Shown here in pieces: positions 44,224-63,395 of a DNA stretch of 64,000 nucleotides (position 1 is the first letter of the stretch; each line of letters begins with the position of its first letter). The DNA is from Pavona decussata. Lineage: Eukaryota. Both the position numbers and the translations under genes were made by a program. The stretch covers positions 310,001 through 374,000 of the forward strand of contig CDRNST010000035.1 in the NCBI GenBank assembly GCA_977016875.1, written 5' to 3'. The notes beneath the pieces were generated by a model. It had not been told where the DNA came from. It did no database searches and saw nothing but the letters and a program-made list of their open reading frames with translations.

Positions 44224-45482
44224 TTAGTGGCATCCACAAGTTGAAGCAACCATTCCACCATACTCAGTCAATGCAATCGATCTATCACTAGTCTTATACA
44301 AAACGCTGATACCGTGCAGTTTGGTGGGAGCACATGATGGAGACGGTATGCGACTGTCCATTCTGTGTAGAATGTTTTGCAAAATGGCATGGTTGGTTGG
44401 TTCAACGTGCATATCAAGAACACTTGAACAAGTACCCTCACAGTAATTTGCGCTGTATCCACTTGGAGCGATAATCCAGTTCCACTTTAGCTTTTTGAAC
44501 TGCACGTAAACCCACCGCCGTCGGCAGGTCCTGAAGGCTGACCGCTTAGCACGGTTTGTTGGCGTTGTGGAGGCGTTTGCAACGATGTATTCCCCTTCTT
44601 CTCGAACTAGGTTATTGTTGCAATTTTTGAAAGTTTTTGACGATTTGGCTTTTAAATGTGGATTTTCAGTGTATGTCACCAAGAATGGTGCTCTTCTGCC
44701 ACGACTGCCGATGCGAAATTCTGTGGGAAAGGCCTTCATTCCTTGAACACTTAGCATTAAGCCAAAATTTTCTTTGGGTTTTTCTTTCCAGAATTTAACT
44801 GCAGAAGTTATATTGAAGCTAATCCATCGACCGACACTTTCTTTGTAACTAACAAGACGAGAAGCCAAAAGAACTTTGTTGTTCTTTGGTTGAATGCTTT
44901 TGTCTTGCGACGGCCTTTTCAAGCGGAACAGTCTGATCTTAAAATGCCCTAATCTGCTGCTATAACCCAGTGGCTTCTTCTTGTAAATTCTCAACTCTGC
45001 TTTCTTGATTTTCTCTTGGGCTGGAATCGTAGACAAGTTGAAGAATAGTTGGTGATGAAGTGGCACTGCATGCTCGTTTTTCCCTGCGGCTGAAGTTAAG
45101 GCAACAAGCAGTGAGATGACAGTCAATGTGTATTTAACTTGGCATACAGTTTGATGGCTCGTCTTTAAAAAGTTTTAAGCTTATTAGGCAAAGGTATATA
45201 CTTACGTTCTCGTAAAAAGACTCTTACTATGTCGGACTCCCTTTGATATAATCTTCCCCGAGGTAAATGCGTTCGCTTTCTGTACAAATCAAGCAGGAAT
45301 CTTGGAACTTCGGCCTTCTCTCTTTCTTTGTTTGGCTGTTTGGCGGAGCGAGCTTCTCTCGCCACGAATTTCCGAAGTAACCCGTTTGAATGACTGTAAA
45401 CCTTATTAGAAATCTCGCCATGTAAAACGTAGATTGAGAAATTAAATATTAAAAATGCTATAAACATTGAATAGAGTGCCAT
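44224..45482 (-). CDS. TGF-beta superfamily ligand, BMP-type (ADMP/BMP5-8-like, divergent), 380 aa
   Basis: Exon 1, 45482-45206: signal peptide, VPRFLLDLY, SDIVRVF. Exon 2, 45089-44224: LFFNLSTIP…KAELRIYK, WISFNIT, PFLVTY, furin site RAKR, and the mature cystine knot C…WIIAPSGYSANYCEGTC…PTNHAILQ…SCAPTKL…MVASTCGCH. Phase-1 GT-AG intron 45205-45090. Confidence 0.95.
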
Positions 45483-51300: not shown

Positions 51301-54300
51301 NNNNNNNNNNNTGGCTCAAACAGTTTCCTTTTTATCACTGCATACTGAAATGATGGTATCAAACAAATGCTTAAACATTCGCAAACAATTTATGCTCATT
51401 TTTTCGTCAATTGCAATCACCATGTCAAGACGCAACGTTTTGCAAAAAAAAAAAAAAAGGGGGGAGGGGTTCAGAGCCATTTTAAATTTTCGAAAATGAA
51501 AGGTGGCTTTACATGCTGATTACAAGCCTAAAGTAAAAATAGGGGTCCCACTACGTTTCGATGACTCCATGTCATCAATCATCAAGTATCAAAAACAACT
51601 ATCAGCTATCTAGGACCAAAGTACTTTAATTCTTTAAATAAAGACATTTGTAACTGGGTATTTCTTTTCTCCTTTAATTCCAGCCTTAAAAAGATATATC
51701 TATAGCAACTGATAAATCTGTTATCATCATTTTAACCTTACATGTAATGTTTTTTTCAAATGCATATCGTACGTCGTTTTATGATTGTCTCAACTGCAAT
51801 TGTATCAACCGTCTCACAGTCTATAAACCTCTTATGTAATAGCAATGCCATGAGCTAGCCTTATTCCATAAGCCATATGGTTTCTCCTGAGGCTTCCTCA
51901 TCACTTTCTCTGTCATCTCTTTTCTTCCGCTCATATGTCATTTTTTCAACGTGCGTGGTGAAATAAATAAAAAGAAATTTAAAAACTGTAATTTATTCAG
52001 CAATAATTGGGCATTTGTGTGAGTTATTGTTGTATTAGCTGAAAAATAGTGGTAATATTGATCCATCAAAGTTTAAAAGCTTAAAAGTGCTAGAATGATA
52101 TCGCTCAAGTTTATATACAAGGAGTCTAACACTGAATAGGAAACACTCAAGATTAACATATGTTGGTTTTCCCTCCCACATTTTTTACTTAAGTTTATAA
52201 CTTTTGTATTAAGTTGTTTCTGGTCATTCACTAACTGTAACATAAAGCTCAGAAGGTGTAATGAGGATACTATTTCCAAACTAATCACCAAGTAAAGTTT
52301 CAGGACGATTGGGCTTTGACAAGTGCCAGTCACCTTCAAAGAAAAACATGCCAGATTTTCAGCAGATTCGAAGTTTTTTTATAACCGCCGCTTTCAAACA
52401 ACTTGATAGGGCGAGTGACTAACGTCGACTTCGGTTTCTTTGATTGGTTTGTAACCTGTCAGACGAAAGATTTGGCTGCACATAAGATTGCCTGGTCTTA
52501 TTCCTTTGGCGCAAAGTACATCCACGTGCTAATTTCTTGTGATCTCCGTCCTTCTTGAGCTTTTTATCCTTAGCAAGCCTTAACATTTCATGGGGGAGAA
52601 TATAGGATAAAGTCATTCAGTTGTTTTTCCTGCTTTGAATCGAAGTGATTATAAATGGAAGAACACGAGATTTATCCGCAAAGATTTCGTTTCGTTCAAC
52701 TATTTCGGTGGTTACATATTTCCGAACTGTAAAATCTGGCAGCACCTTACTGGTACGAATTTGAAGGTGGCACCGTTATCTGTTTCCGAAGTGGGTACAA
52801 AACGTGTAAGAATAGGCGGTCCAGATTACGCTGTGAAAAATAGTCCTCTCATTGCAAATTTGTCCGAATTCGATTTGGTCTCTAACACACTAACTGGCAT
52901 CTGTTGGCTCAAGAGCTGTAATAGACAACTGAAACATAGATTATTAGCAAAAAAATTTCAAGCCATTTTTTTCTCAGAACACCTGTCCACAGACTAAAGG
53001 CTAGTTAGTTGTACCAACCTTTCCAAGTGTAGTGAATTTGTTTCATTTGCTTGCCTTTGACCCATAAATAAAGTCTTCCTGGCCCCGTCATATTGCAAGT
53101 AAAGCTTCGTAAAACTCACGCCAAATGCGAGAAACAAGAAAAAGAAACAAACGAAGAACTTTATTACATCTCCTAACATCTGGGTGAAAGCCTGCAACAG
53201 CGGTCCAGTGATAGAGTTGGCTTGAATAAATGAGAAGTTGTGGATGAATGCTAATAAGATTCCAACTGCCCGAAAACATTCAGAAATTAGCAGGGTCGCG
53301 TATGCGTGATCTTTCACATGGTTTTCCCACACCATGGAGGTAACTTTTCCGGATAACACTCCGTAGCAAGCCCACCAAATAACGTGGTGTAGAAAAAATG
53401 CCGTCATCGCTGCCATATAATTGTAATTCCAATAGTTAGAAAAGAACCGGGATCTTCCTAGCTGGAAAGCATCTGTAATGAATTCCACCAGCAGCCCAAT
53501 GAAGAATACGAGAACAATCCAGTCTTTGCAAAACACAAATAAAAAAAGCAGTTAATTCATAACAATTGTGATCGTACACAGTATGGATTCTCGTGTCTTT
53601 GTTATATCATATTAAGCAAACTATTACCAATTATTACCAATGGATAAGTGATTACCAATGGATAAGTGAGGTGCTCAGGACCAGGTTACCGCCGCCCAAA
53701 AAGGAGCAATATTGAAATCGTCAACCCTTTGGATACTTACAACACATATTTGCGTTGAAAACACTGTTCGTGCCTTCCGGTGATTTTCTTCTTGTTTAAC
53801 TTAAGTTACAATGTAGGAATAGCACCAACGGTGAATTTTGCCATCGTCGCGACCAACAAACCGACTAAACCTCCCGATTTTCGCTGCATATATGGGAATC
53901 CCGAATCATCGGGTTTGGATTCGAGTTGGACCGCACCAGTCAGGGTGCAACCCTAAATGACATGGAAAAATATTTCCGCTTCCTCCTAAGTAAGTGAGAC
54001 CAAAATCCGTGTTGTTACACCCGTAAACGACCTCCGTGATTTACAGACTGTACTGATGTTGATTGAACAATAAACGGAACAGTTCAATTTATAATAACAA
54101 TATTACATTATAAAAACAATATATTTTCTCACTTTCAATACCTATAAATAAGGCTTTTCCGTTATTTCCATTTTACTCATTTGGCAATGACGATATGAAG
54201 TCGTCGAAACGTCATGCTGTTTTACTATCGTAAATTTTCTTGTTGAAAAAAAAATTTAGACGACAAAATCATTTTAAAGTTTGAGGCACTGTTAACTGCT

Positions 54301-57696: not shown

Positions 57697-59085
57697 AGGA
57701 ACGACTACTCTGCTTAGAATGGATGTAGTTAAACTTCTATGATTCGTTTGACTTCCAACTGTTTTTTTTAGTGATAGAATAGAATTAAAAAATCCTTCTG
57801 CCTGTGACTGATTTGAACTAAATACTGTGGTGTAAAAATTATGTCATTACTCTTGGTCACATTCTTGGTTTTCTCGATTTCGGTAAAGCAGCGCTACAAT
57901 GGCATAAAATGTAAACGTTAAGGCAATAGACTTAAAAGAAATGGAAAGTCAAAATTTGGAAAAATGTCAAAATGTTGTTGTCATGCAAAGTTGCATTAAC
58001 TAAGACATCTCATACCAAATGGTCACCAGGTTCGTTATAAGAAAAGTTACAATATTCGGTAACTTTTACTTCAAATTTTATAAGGTTGTAAATCTTCAAA
58101 GAGAGCGCGGGCACTTTCTATCCTCCACTTCCCTCCTGCTAGGTTAATTAAGGTAAAAGATGATTATCTTTACAAGGAATGTTTCGGGATATAAAGAATA
58201 TATGTAAATCCGGTATACCTTCTCATTTCTGGTTGCGATGGCGAATTCAAGAATGTTTAAGAGCTCTTTCTCTATGTTAGGCGTTATTCCTTCCTCATTT
58301 CTCATCTCCATGACGCATCTGATCTCTTTCGTGGAGCGGCATTCGTTGAGCAAGGCCACGGCGAACTCTTTGCAACCGTCAGCGAGCTCGATATACTCCT
58401 TTTTGAACTCGTATTCTTTCTTGGCAAAAGTACACAGTTCTTTGTTCAGGAGGCATGTTCGATAAATGGGATCCGGACCACTTTGCACGTTTCGAAGAAA
58501 TGAGGCTGCAATGTACAGGGGGTTAGTAAGCGCTCGGTAAAAGTTCAAACGGTACACGGCGGGTTGAAGCTTCTCTTTGGCCACTCCATTGGAATTTGTA
58601 GGCCACTGAGGATTTGTTGGATCGCAAATAGTGAAACCATGTTTCATAAAGAGTTTCACAATTTGCAAATTCTGCAAAAAGATCCCAAGCATAAATGGGG
58701 TGACGTGCCCTTGGCGTTTCAAGGCACTTACTGCACACAATGACGGCGGGCGGTGAAATTTGAGAAGAACTTTCACACCACCAACATCACAGTCATTAAC
58801 TGCATGAAACAAGGCTTGCTCCAAGTCTGCTCCGCTGCTTAGCAAGGTTCTGATCATGTCGTTTCGAACTTTTGTATCTTGCAGGCTCCCTGCTACTTGC
58901 AGAGCTGTTTTACCGGAGCTGTTCAGGCAATTCAGGTCGCATTTCGGTTTCGACAAATTTAAAGTTTCTCTCACACTCTCCAAATCTCCTTTCCTGATCG
59001 TATCAAAAAGATTTCGTTGCACGTTGTTAATCGGACGATAAATATCCACTGATATTTCTTCAAGGAAATGGTTTGTTGCTTCCAT
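48317..59085 (-). CDS. Short transient receptor potential (TRPC-family) cation channel, 746 aa
   Basis: Exons 59085-58219 (ankyrin-like repeats, RLNFYRALTNP, EYEFKKEY), 55910-55613 (FVCHPYSQ, PCVKF, S1), 53523-53019 (S2-S5, GPLLQAFTQMLGDVIKF), 51053-50855 (pore ETIFWSLFG, S6 VVALNMLIAMLNESF), 50283-50122 (TRP box EWKFMR, LPSPFN), 48822-48769, 48472-48317 (…GQSTKL*). Phases 0/1/2/0/0/0 are consistent; total 2241 nt. Confidence 0.92.
49200..49636. mobile_element. Degenerate MITE in a TRPC intron
   Basis: Imperfect TIRs TATGTATCAGTCAATTCCAG…/…TTGGAAATATTTGATATATTA with C-rich and G-rich subtermini. Confidence 0.5.
50323..50480. mobile_element. Short MITE in a TRPC intron
   Basis: TIRs AATAGCTTTTTTCACGGTT…CTCATTTGAATTACAATG / CATTGTAATGCAAATGAG…AACCGTGAAAAGGGCTATT. 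Confidence 0.75.
51139..51311. other. Assembly gap (inside TRPC intron 3)
   Basis: Run of N; the flanking exons join in frame without needing it. Confidence 0.99.
51590..51972 (+). mobile_element. 5'-truncated CR1/L2-like LINE 3' fragment
   Basis: Translates as ISYLGPKYFNSLNKDICN…SLKKIYL*, like an ORF2 C-terminus, then a 3'UTR ending AAATAAATAAA. Confidence 0.6.
53633..53668. repeat. 18-bp tandem duplication
   Basis: ATTACCAATGGATAAGTG x2. Confidence 0.85.
56011..56050 (-). ncRNA. Minimal hammerhead-ribozyme-like motif (Penelope pLTR)
   Basis: Minus strand reads CTGAAGA-T-GGATGA-AGTT-TCATCC-GAAAC-ATGTTTA. Confidence 0.6.
56474..56979 (-). mobile_element. 5'-truncated CR1/L2-clade LINE nested in the Penelope element
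   Basis: ORF2 C-terminus …NTRNNGKAAKLPKVKLDFARCSFYFLGASIFNSLP…FRKALDDFYL*, 3'UTR, and (ATT)n tail at 56474-56549; flanked by ACAGCCT (56467-56473, 56980-56986). Confidence 0.85.
57412..57448 (+). ncRNA. Minimal hammerhead-ribozyme-like motif, second copy
   Basis: CTGAAGA-T-GGATGA-CGTT-TCATCC-GAAAC-ATGT. Confidence 0.5.
57657..57696. repeat. (TTG)n microsatellite
   Basis: Directly visible. Confidence 0.95.
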
Positions 59086-61972: not shown

Positions 61973-63395
61973 TTAGTCAGGCAAAATTGGTACACCAACA
62001 CGTTGGACTCGTTTCAATCTCTCAGGCGTTTGAGCTGCATAGTATTCTTCTAGCATTGCATTCGCGGCAGTTGGAGAAACATGACCTGGATGTGCTTCTT
62101 GAGGAATCCCTCTACTTGGGGTTTGCGAATTATGCACTTGCGGACCATGTCTTGGATAGTTGTAAAAGGCTGTTGGACCGGTCAGGCTTTGACCATCTAG
62201 AGATTTTGAACGATACCAAGTGACTCCTTCAGTGTTGTAATCTTCTCTTGGAAGTGCAAATGGTGGCGGGTTAGGGCTATCTTCCAACTGCCATAACTGG
62301 ACCTCCCTTACAGGCATCAATACATCCCCATTATACCTTCTGCTATCCTCTAGCTCTTTCGATTTCTTCTTTCCATTTTTTGTTGGTGACTTTGCCCTCG
62401 GATGGGGAGCAGTCATGTACCCCATAGGGTAATGTTCACGGCCCTCTTGGGATCTTGGAGGAATCATCCCCAACCTGACCATTCTCTCTTCAGTTTCGGG
62501 TCTTGTGTCTGATAGCACCGGTAAGCTTCCTCTCTTCCAGTCGGATTCACTGCGAGACCTGACATATCGACTTGCAGAAGAGGGTCGATAATCTGATCTG
62601 TTAAGTTCTTTGGAATACCTTGCTAAGGACCTTCCGACAATAAAAGGTTCATTTCCAGCTGCTCTTGCAAGCGAACTTGATCGCACCTCTTCTGGCGGTT
62701 TTTCTTTCAGAAACCAATTGGAACTGTTGTTTGGGGAAGGCACGGCCACAGAATTCGACCGGTCCACTCCCAATAAGACTTGGGCATGATCAACACCAGG
62801 AGATGGAATCGATTGCAATCTCTGCATTCGACTTTCACGTTTCCTGATCTGGTCCTTCCTAGAAATATGGTAATGAAAGAACGCATCACACAAGAGAATA
62901 GCTACTGTTCCTGTAGCAGCCATTTCTAATTTAATATAAACACAAGAATTGTGATAAACAGTTATATATCATTGTGTGATTACACCAGAATACTATATTT
63001 AGTGAATACAATTCACAAATAGCCTCATTTTTTCTGGAAATTGCGACATGTCTTGGACTTTGTTAATTTCTTCTTGAAATATGTAGTTCTCTTGCGGCAA
63101 AGGTATAATCAATAAAATTCCTCGATTTCACGAAATGTCTTTTATTTATTTCTTCACTGACATGACATGAAAAGGCGCACTTTTCAACAGAAGAAAGAAT
63201 CGTGGTCTACGGCACAAACTTAACATGTGTAACAAATAAAAAAGAAAGACAAATTATTGAAAAATATTTTTAGTTATCTAATTACCTGGCCCATAGAGTA
63301 CAAAATACAATGATGATACATAGTAGAACGAAAATCAATGCTGCTAAGCCAGCTACGAGACCAATGAACCAAGTCTCCTCTGTCAACTTCACCAT
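61973..63395 (-). CDS. Uncharacterised single-pass membrane protein with long disordered cytoplasmic tail (~331 aa)
   Basis: Exon 63395-63286 (MVKLTEETWFIGLVAGLAALIFVLLCIIIVFCTLWA, ATG in AACATGG context, acceptor at 63399-63400) splices in phase 2 to exon 62858-61973 (RKDQIRKRESR…VPILPD*). Upstream coding exons outside the window cannot be excluded. Confidence 0.8.

Follow-up and report, generated by a model that had tools for sequence, protein, structure and literature searches.

A conserved six-cysteine ADMP-like ligand of stony corals that lacks the inter-chain cysteine

Ligands with and without the inter-chain cysteine

Corals and sea anemones rely on BMP signalling to pattern their second body axis. 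In the structures of BMP-2 and BMP-7, the first cysteine of an adjacent pair (Cys78 of BMP-2) forms the bond between the two chains. GDF3 and Lefty, both deuterostome families, lack this cysteine and are reported antagonists or heterodimer partners. GDF9 and BMP15, which lack the cysteine too, are agonists whose subunits can be swapped extracellularly to give heterodimers (PMC6953019). In Nematostella, four BMP ligands have been counted, and the gene models for admp (NV2.2978) and smad1/5 (NV2.2977) are consecutive (PMC11846459).

The window analyzed here was the whole stretch of 64,000 nucleotides from Pavona decussata (contig CDRNST010000035.1, positions 310,001 to 374,000). A gene on its minus strand (45482-44224) consists of two exons with an intact frame, and encodes a signal peptide, a prodomain, an RAKR furin site and a mature domain (Table 1). 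We designated this gene and its stony-coral orthologues group A.

The coral ligand resembled GDF9 and BMP15 in its six-cysteine mature domain, in the serine that replaces the inter-chain cysteine (P-S-C-V-P in GDF9), and in a lone conserved prodomain cysteine (PMC7017013). GDF9 differed in having W-x-x-W in finger 1 and no PTNHA motif, and its ovarian function is irrelevant to a coral. GDF9 and BMP15 form non-covalent dimers capable of heterodimer exchange (PMC6953019). A wrist helix is predicted in the coral exon-2 model (residues 232-243, low confidence), whereas Lefty is not known to have one. BMP6 and BMP7 shared the knot spacing and the C-G-C-H end with the coral ligand; what set them apart were seven cysteines, W-x-x-W, the pre-helix F-P and an N-glycan sequon ahead of the helix.

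The nearest relatives of the window gene were Nematostella ADMP and two further six-cysteine groups of corals, described below. The Nematostella protein (NV2.2978, P0057) and a coral gene, L003, fell in the same clade as group A (100/100). Common to ADMP and group A were the exon-2 architecture, the furin site, the L-K-W start of finger 1, the PTNHAI-Q-N helix motif, the G-M-V-A-S tail and the absence of F-P. On the other hand, ADMP has seven cysteines (A-A-C-C-V-P) and W-x-x-W, and was only about 40% identical to the window gene.

Table 1. Features of the group A gene (positions within the window)
Feature	Position	Strand	Basis or remark
Exon 1	45206..45482	-	Start codon 45482-45480; hydrophobic signal peptide; N-terminal part of prodomain; codon phase 1 at end
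Intron, 116 bp, GT...AG	45090..45205	-	Sequence; CDS of orthologue mRNA L032 runs unbroken across this point
Exon 2	44224..45089	-	Remaining prodomain, furin site, mature domain; stop codon 44226-44224
Lone prodomain Cys (TGC), motif K-N-C, 26 residues before cleavage site	44620..44622	-	Orthologue alignment
Furin-type site R-A-K-R	44542..44553	-	Followed by Ser1 of mature peptide
Mature ligand of 105 residues (cystine knot with six Cys)	44227..44541	-	Pfam and BMP6 alignment
Finger-1 W-N-W, mature residues 20-22	44476..44484	-	One-residue gap against W-Q-D-W of BMP6
Pre-helix loop C-S-S-V-L, mature residues 38-42	44416..44430	-	C-P-F-P-L in BMP2, C-S-F-P-L in BMP6
P-T-N-H-A, mature residues 48-52	44386..44400	-	EPTNHA opposite NATNHA of BMP6
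Ser69 codon TCA at position of inter-chain disulfide Cys	44335..44337	-	Sequence and BMP6 alignment

Gene structure and the mature domain

Exon 1 was supported by the full-length orthologues P0002, P0003 and P0006, of which residues 1-89/92/93 matched 45482-45204/45207 at 57-72% identity. Searched by itself, this exon gave no Pfam match. The signal peptide was called by eye only, from the hydrophobic N-terminus. L032, a 1562-bp contig from the assembly of a sequencing run, carries the unbroken 376-aa CDS of the orthologue P0002 from a related species, which indicated a spliced mRNA of the orthologue. The first acceptor of the intron gives the junction ...FLRE-P-AGKNEH, which resembles ...FFRE-P-AGDGEH of Oculina. 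With an alternative in-frame AG acceptor 6 nt downstream, exon 2 would begin at 45083.

In the 300-aa open frame of exon 2, Pfam detected TGFb_propeptide (PF00688) at residues 18-152 (E 1.7e-21; 77.4 bits against a curated cut-off of 25.8) and TGF_beta (PF00019) at residues 201-299 (E 1.3e-29; 103.4 bits against 27). Matches of both domains above the curated cut-offs, far beyond chance, place the encoded protein by homology in the TGF-beta superfamily. The exons were compared with relatives one by one. A dibasic R-x-(K/R)-R was present at the furin position in every group A orthologue.

The closest solved structure was BMP6 (2r53), with an E-value of 2.7e-33 in HMMER; BMP7 (1bmp) gave 8.9e-29. 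The original prediction, made from the letters of the window, had described six mature cysteines, a CC pair that reads S-C, and a finger 1 that is one residue short. All three were found as described. The cysteines sit in TCRR, NYCEGTC, PSCAP and TCGC on the minus strand, and their spacing is that of the canonical knot (C...CxGxC...C...CxC). By homology with BMP-2, the knot pairs would be Cys6-Cys70, Cys34-Cys102 and Cys38-Cys104. In the alignment with BMP6 (2r53), PSPSCAPTKL of the coral stood opposite PKPCCAPTKL, so that Ser69 (TCA) replaces the first cysteine of the pair. In finger 1, W-N-W left a gap against W-Q-D-W. A fourth point, CSSVL in place of CPFPL, was found as well, but the inference drawn from it for this gene is weakened. 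The Leu aligned to Leu51 of BMP-2 is retained, and F-P is missing across the entire ADMP-like superclade described below, including the seven-cysteine ADMP. The loss of F-P is ancestral to the superclade and therefore tells nothing specific about the window gene.

The codon at the Ser69 position was TCA in the window gene and P0001, TCT in P0002, and TTG (Leu) in P0011. TCA is two base changes away from any cysteine codon.

W-(N/H/D)-W was found in every group A sequence, whereas ADMP and the two paralogue groups B and T have W-x-x-W. Within the superclade, the deletion was invariant in group A and confined to it. The same spacing occurs in the activin-like and TGF-beta genes of the Pavona genome, and it is also the spacing of TGF-beta1-3 and GDF8/11. 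These sequences point to a tolerated geometry, though one that is unusual among BMP-class ligands.

The PTNHA motif also occurs in the ADMP, group T and GDF5-like genes of Pavona. The N-glycosylation sequon that BMP2 and BMP6 have at this position is missing in the coral ligand, and no N-glycan sequon was found elsewhere in its mature domain.

The residues of BMP-2 to which we ascribe wrist roles (Trp28, Trp31, Leu51, Tyr103 and Met106) all had their aligned counterparts retained in the coral. The same was true of Ala34, Ser88, Leu90 and Leu100, which we take to be among the type II ('knuckle') contacts. The coral positions that we take to align with His39 and Glu109 of BMP-2 differ.

Placement in the ADMP-like lineage and conservation in corals

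Scanned in six frames with the TGF_beta model, the 602-Mb genome from which the window comes yielded 34 matches. Motifs, structure matches and trees identified the loci of BMP2/4 (L001), a GDF5-like gene (L002), BMP5-8 (L009) and an activin-like gene (L007); L008, from its motifs alone, was read as a putative TGF-beta proper. L003 has seven cysteines. L004 has six, and lies 117 kb from the group A gene on the same contig. Further six-cysteine TGF-beta genes are present elsewhere in the genome.

L003 and Nematostella P0057, at 53% identity, were orthologous. P0057 adjoins a Smad gene, which matches the order of NV2.2978 and NV2.2977, and the clade of P0057 and L003 was therefore taken as cnidarian ADMP. 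This arrangement is not kept in Pavona, where the MH2 matches lay on contigs other than that of the coral ADMP.

Maximum-likelihood trees joined four groups, namely ADMP, group A, group B and group T, in an ADMP-like superclade. Support was 100/100 with 299 columns from the prodomain and mature domain, and 92/96 with the mature domain only. The ADMP character that the original prediction had read from PTNHA was thus borne out. The mature-domain phylogeny, which it had proposed as a check, placed group A with ADMP and apart from BMP2/4, BMP5-8 and GDF5-7. We interpreted the window gene, on these trees, as a member of a stony-coral paralogue group of the cnidarian ADMP-like lineage.

Group B has six cysteines, P-S-P-S-C-V-P and W-x-x-W. 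Group T, which includes L004, has six cysteines and A-A-T-C-V-P. Named 'DVR-1 homolog' in Orbicella (group T) and 'BMP7-like' in Oculina (group B), these two groups were like group A in their superclade, the lost cysteine and their linkage. The residue replacing the cysteine was Thr in T and Ser, Leu or Val in B. Both groups, unlike group A, retain W-x-x-W and lack the cysteine of the prodomain linker.

The three groups were found close together in several corals. Groups A and T are on one contig (C35) in Pavona. In another coral (L034), groups A and B stand head to head, 3.5 kb apart, with a T gene placed on the same contig. Oculina has A and B on one chromosome, and Montipora has A and T on one chromosome. 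This suggested that the groups are products of local duplication. A copy or remnant of group B was found neither in the window (tblastn) nor in the genome-wide scan.

Absence of the inter-chain cysteine was common to all group A orthologues across Scleractinia and to groups B and T. The proposal of an independently evolved six-cysteine BMP in a cnidarian therefore held in that a BMP-class ligand there truly lacks this cysteine, but not in that the trait evolved in this gene alone. As to whether the cysteine was lost once or twice, the 299-column tree joined A, B and T weakly (82/48) and the mature-only tree joined T with ADMP (92/73). The AU test left the latter grouping unrejected (p = 0.57).

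The word-indexed protein search returned no bilaterian ADMP sequence; the best bilaterian matches were BMP6/7, 60A, GDF6/7, univin and GDF9. In a thinly sampled mature-domain tree that lacked bilaterian BMP15, ADMP, Nodal and BMP3, the GDF9 branch, very long at 1.49 changes/site, sat inside the ADMP clade. A look-up in the ESM Atlas gave generic BMP/GDF clusters only.

Orthologues from this protein search formed 18 clusters, with identities of 52-95%. The named members of group A come from Acropora, Montipora, Porites and Oculina, which we take to represent both complex and robust stony corals. The window gene was 63% identical to the Porites cluster and 65-69% identical to those of Acroporidae. 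A protein from an ENA assembly (P0221) was identical to it in 279 of 280 residues. Confirmation of the serine in orthologues, another check that had been proposed, showed that the inter-chain cysteine was absent in 18/18 clusters (Ser, Leu or Met). W-x-W was likewise present in 18/18. Both features were kept by every member read from the 90%-identity clusters, a set drawn from many independent assemblies.

From the first cysteine onward, 58 of 100 positions were invariant among 18 distinct group A orthologues. The dN/dS of the mature domain was 0.014 (dS 0.86) in one pair and 0.043 in a second pair; that of the prodomain was about 0.33. Purifying selection on the mature domain is very strong, a sign of constrained function, but one that does not distinguish an agonist from an antagonist.

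Two conventional explanations were considered and rejected. That the serine is a sequencing or assembly error or a private allele, or that the gene is a decaying pseudogene, has practically no chance of being correct. The same serine was read in P0001 and P0221, and the cysteine was missing from every member that was read in the 90%-identity clusters. The codon is two changes from cysteine, the frame is intact, the splice and furin sites are conserved, and the dN/dS values (0.014-0.043) are low. Nothing was found in favour of this explanation. These comparisons indicate a genuine, ancient loss of the cysteine that corals have conserved. The other explanation, that the gene is a BMP5-8 orthologue that signals conventionally, is suggested by the NCBI automatic names ('BMP6-like', 'BMP8A-like'), by the closest solved structures, BMP6 and BMP7, and by the best bilaterian profile matches, which were BMP6/7. 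However, Pavona has its own BMP5-8 gene (L009), which grouped with bilaterian BMP5-8. Constraining group A to join BMP5-8 cost 44.3 log-likelihood units (AU p = 0.0003). This orthology was therefore rejected and is very improbable, and the names are best-hit labels rather than statements of orthology.

The prodomain cysteine, dimer formation and signalling

The window gene and its 18 orthologues (P0001-P0018) all have the K-N-C cysteine, which was the sole prodomain cysteine conserved in full-length members of group A. In the AlphaFold2 model of the exon-2 product, the linker in which it lies was predicted to be disordered (pLDDT about 27-30). The mean pLDDT of this model was 59, with low confidence in the mature part, and the model was used only for the linker and the prodomain strands. 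With one conserved cysteine beyond the six of the knot, the secreted pro-protein has an odd total of seven.

A homodimer of the mature ligand was predicted with a score of 0.69, against 0.00 for the best of three controls. Contacts were identical between runs, and the pLDDT was at least 83. The predicted interface comprised helix residues 49-58, finger residues 11-18, 31-35 and 94-99, and the stretch that includes Ser69 (residues 68-72). Of proteins solved as pairs of one chain, 21/30 passed the mark for a homodimer, and of those solved as single chains, 0/23; among eukaryotes, 17/29 passed, and 1/7 of those without an older solved relative. By this benchmark, the pass is a sign of resemblance to solved BMP dimers, not of binding, and the prediction may reflect recall of those dimers. 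Non-covalent dimerization of the coral ligand can reasonably be inferred. The antagonism or obligate heterodimerization that the original prediction had also raised would be conjecture at this point.

We favour the reading that the intact, expressed-type gene encodes a secreted six-cysteine ADMP-like ligand, which would form a non-covalent dimer and is more likely an agonist or co-ligand at BMP receptors than a pure antagonist. We put the probability of this joint reading at about 0.6. After furin cleavage, the mature domain would keep its three intrachain knot disulfides. The butterfly dimer would be held by non-covalent contacts alone, with the wrist helix of one subunit against the fingers of its partner. 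Subunits could then exchange outside the cell in the manner of GDF9 and BMP15, giving homodimers or heterodimers with other six-cysteine paralogues. The resulting agonist or co-ligand would bind receptors and act through BMP receptors and Smad1/5. The sequence does not tell a Smad1/5 output from a Smad2/3 output. As a conjecture, the lone linker cysteine may bridge two pro-proteins, or a pro-protein and another partner, during assembly.

An agonist or co-ligand was weakly favoured over a pure antagonist by the retained type II-contact and wrist residues. Binding to type I receptors could be weak or altered, since W-x-W touches both tryptophans of the pocket and the pre-helix F-P is missing, a state that would suit a modulator better than an agonist. 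A dedicated antagonist or ligand trap resembling GDF3 or Lefty would go further: it would bind type II receptors or seven-cysteine BMPs, fail to recruit type I receptors, and dampen BMP signalling. The changed spacing of the two tryptophans that line the type I pocket, the absence of F-P, and the retention of residues aligned to several type II contacts are all expected from such a molecule. However, F-P is also absent from the seven-cysteine ADMP of corals and Nematostella, and W-x-W is also present in the TGF-beta and activin-like genes of Pavona, so that neither feature points to lost signalling. The absence of the cysteine is insufficient by itself, as GDF9 and BMP15 are agonists (PMC6953019). 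We consider a dedicated antagonist unlikely.

Alternatively, the covalent link might have moved rather than disappeared, with the lone prodomain cysteine bonding two pro-proteins or tethering the pro-complex to a matrix partner, possibly in a latent form. In favour of this are the single conserved non-knot cysteine of all members of group A, its position in a predicted disordered linker, and the total of seven. There is also precedent: TGF-beta prodomains use cysteine bridges for dimerization and for binding LTBP, and a single conserved cysteine is found in the prodomains of GDF9, BMP15 and Nodal (PMC7017013). On the other hand, the conserved cysteine described in that work lies in strand beta8 of the bowtie, whereas that of the coral follows the last strand of the arm domain. 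The two are therefore probably different sites. In most orthologues, moreover, the coral cysteine is inside an N-C-S/T sequon, and a glycosylation site could be the conserved feature instead. The mature dimer would in any case be non-covalent once furin has cut. A moved link is thus a doubtful alternative to the favoured reading of a non-covalent agonist or co-ligand.

A wider scheme, which we offer tentatively and hold to be improbable as a whole, is a cumulin-like system in stony corals. The linked, ADMP-derived six-cysteine groups A and T (with B where it exists) would be secreted as non-covalent dimers that trade subunits extracellularly, and their heterodimers would have their own choice of receptors. 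To this, group A would add a finger of the TGF-beta/GDF8 style (W-x-W) and a disulfide in the prodomain by which assembly or latency is controlled.

We found no description of coral six-cysteine ADMP-like ligands in the literature. Group A orthologues are already in public databases as automatic predictions, and loss of the inter-chain cysteine is a known kind of variant. A paper on Acropora gastrulation lists a 'DVR-1 homolog' transcript (PMC12360431); no link from this transcript to group T was found.

These results add up to three strongly conserved ADMP-like ligands without the dimer disulfide to those of stony corals, where they have been masked by the misleading automatic names 'BMP6-like', 'BMP8A-like' and 'DVR-1 homolog'. 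Their annotation matters where coral BMP genes serve as a readout, as in studies of development and calcification and in stress transcriptomes. The coral genes offer a natural, independent replicate of the GDF9/BMP15 case, in which it can be asked whether loss of the disulfide accompanies heterodimer exchange. Group A also allows a test of how a one-residue change at the tryptophan pocket affects the choice of type I receptor. If true, the cumulin-like scheme would mean that a combinatorial BMP code arose independently outside the bilaterians.

Divergent TGF-beta-like genes elsewhere in the genome

The Pavona decussata genome also contained other TGF-beta-like genes (see table). The tandem array on contigs C270 and C183 comprised at least 11 near-identical copies, spaced about 35–60 kb apart. 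These genes were very divergent, scoring about 50 bits against PF00019 (Pfam TGF_beta). They also had six Cys, in the context P-L-C-V-P, and both Trp residues of finger 1 were absent. The second small cluster carried a long insert ahead of the CC pair. In the maximum-likelihood tree of mature domains, this cluster and the lone six-Cys gene (L029) both had very long branches.

Features located in the analysis
Feature	Location	Strand or orientation	Remarks
Two AG acceptors, 6 nt apart	window 45083-45091	-	both in frame; start of exon 2
Open frame, 313 residues	window 58147-59085	-	ankyrin repeats; TRP_2 domain (3.1e-08)
Open frame, 316 residues	window 61973-62923	-	
Open frame, 180 residues	window 52994-53536	-	
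Tandem array, loci L013-L022 and L025	C270:218525-554769 and C183:28026-65202	all one strand	PF00019 match
Second small cluster, loci L024, L026, L028, L030	C331:1539722-1573193 and C334:3202001		divergent TGF-beta-like
Lone odd six-Cys gene, L029	C90:1704118		motif R-P-R-C-V-P
Nematostella vectensis ADMP and Smad genes, L031	OW051994.1:10299240-10320578	convergent	
Group B gene, another coral	L034:5624-6541	-	
Group A gene, another coral	L034:10001-10858	+	
GDF9-ADMP likeness	proteins P0107, P0110, P0111		mature-domain tree

Vertebrate GDF9 and cnidarian ADMP

Vertebrate GDF9 and cnidarian ADMP had L-K-W-D-K-W-I-I-A-P and D-G-S-I-V-x-K-E-Y in common. In the same tree, GDF9 fell within the cnidarian ADMP clade, with a branch length of 1.49 changes per site. 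This nesting was likely produced by long-branch attraction together with biased sampling, and we treat the placement as a lead only.

Exon 2 and gene neighbourhoods

Exon 2 of the six-Cys ligand gene had two possible acceptors. Splicing at the second one would shorten the prodomain by two residues and change the junction residue from Pro to Arg. Elsewhere in the window, the 313-residue frame probably represents the first large exon of a gene for a TRP-type cation channel. The 316- and 180-residue frames gave no Pfam match.

In Nematostella, a Smad gene with MH1 and MH2 lay 5 kb from ADMP. No MH2 match was found on C218, the contig with the coral ADMP orthologue in Pavona. The window contained no copy of group B, the related six-Cys paralogues. 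In another coral (L034), group B and group A genes adjoined in divergent orientation, 3.5 kb apart, and these neighbours perhaps share regulatory DNA.
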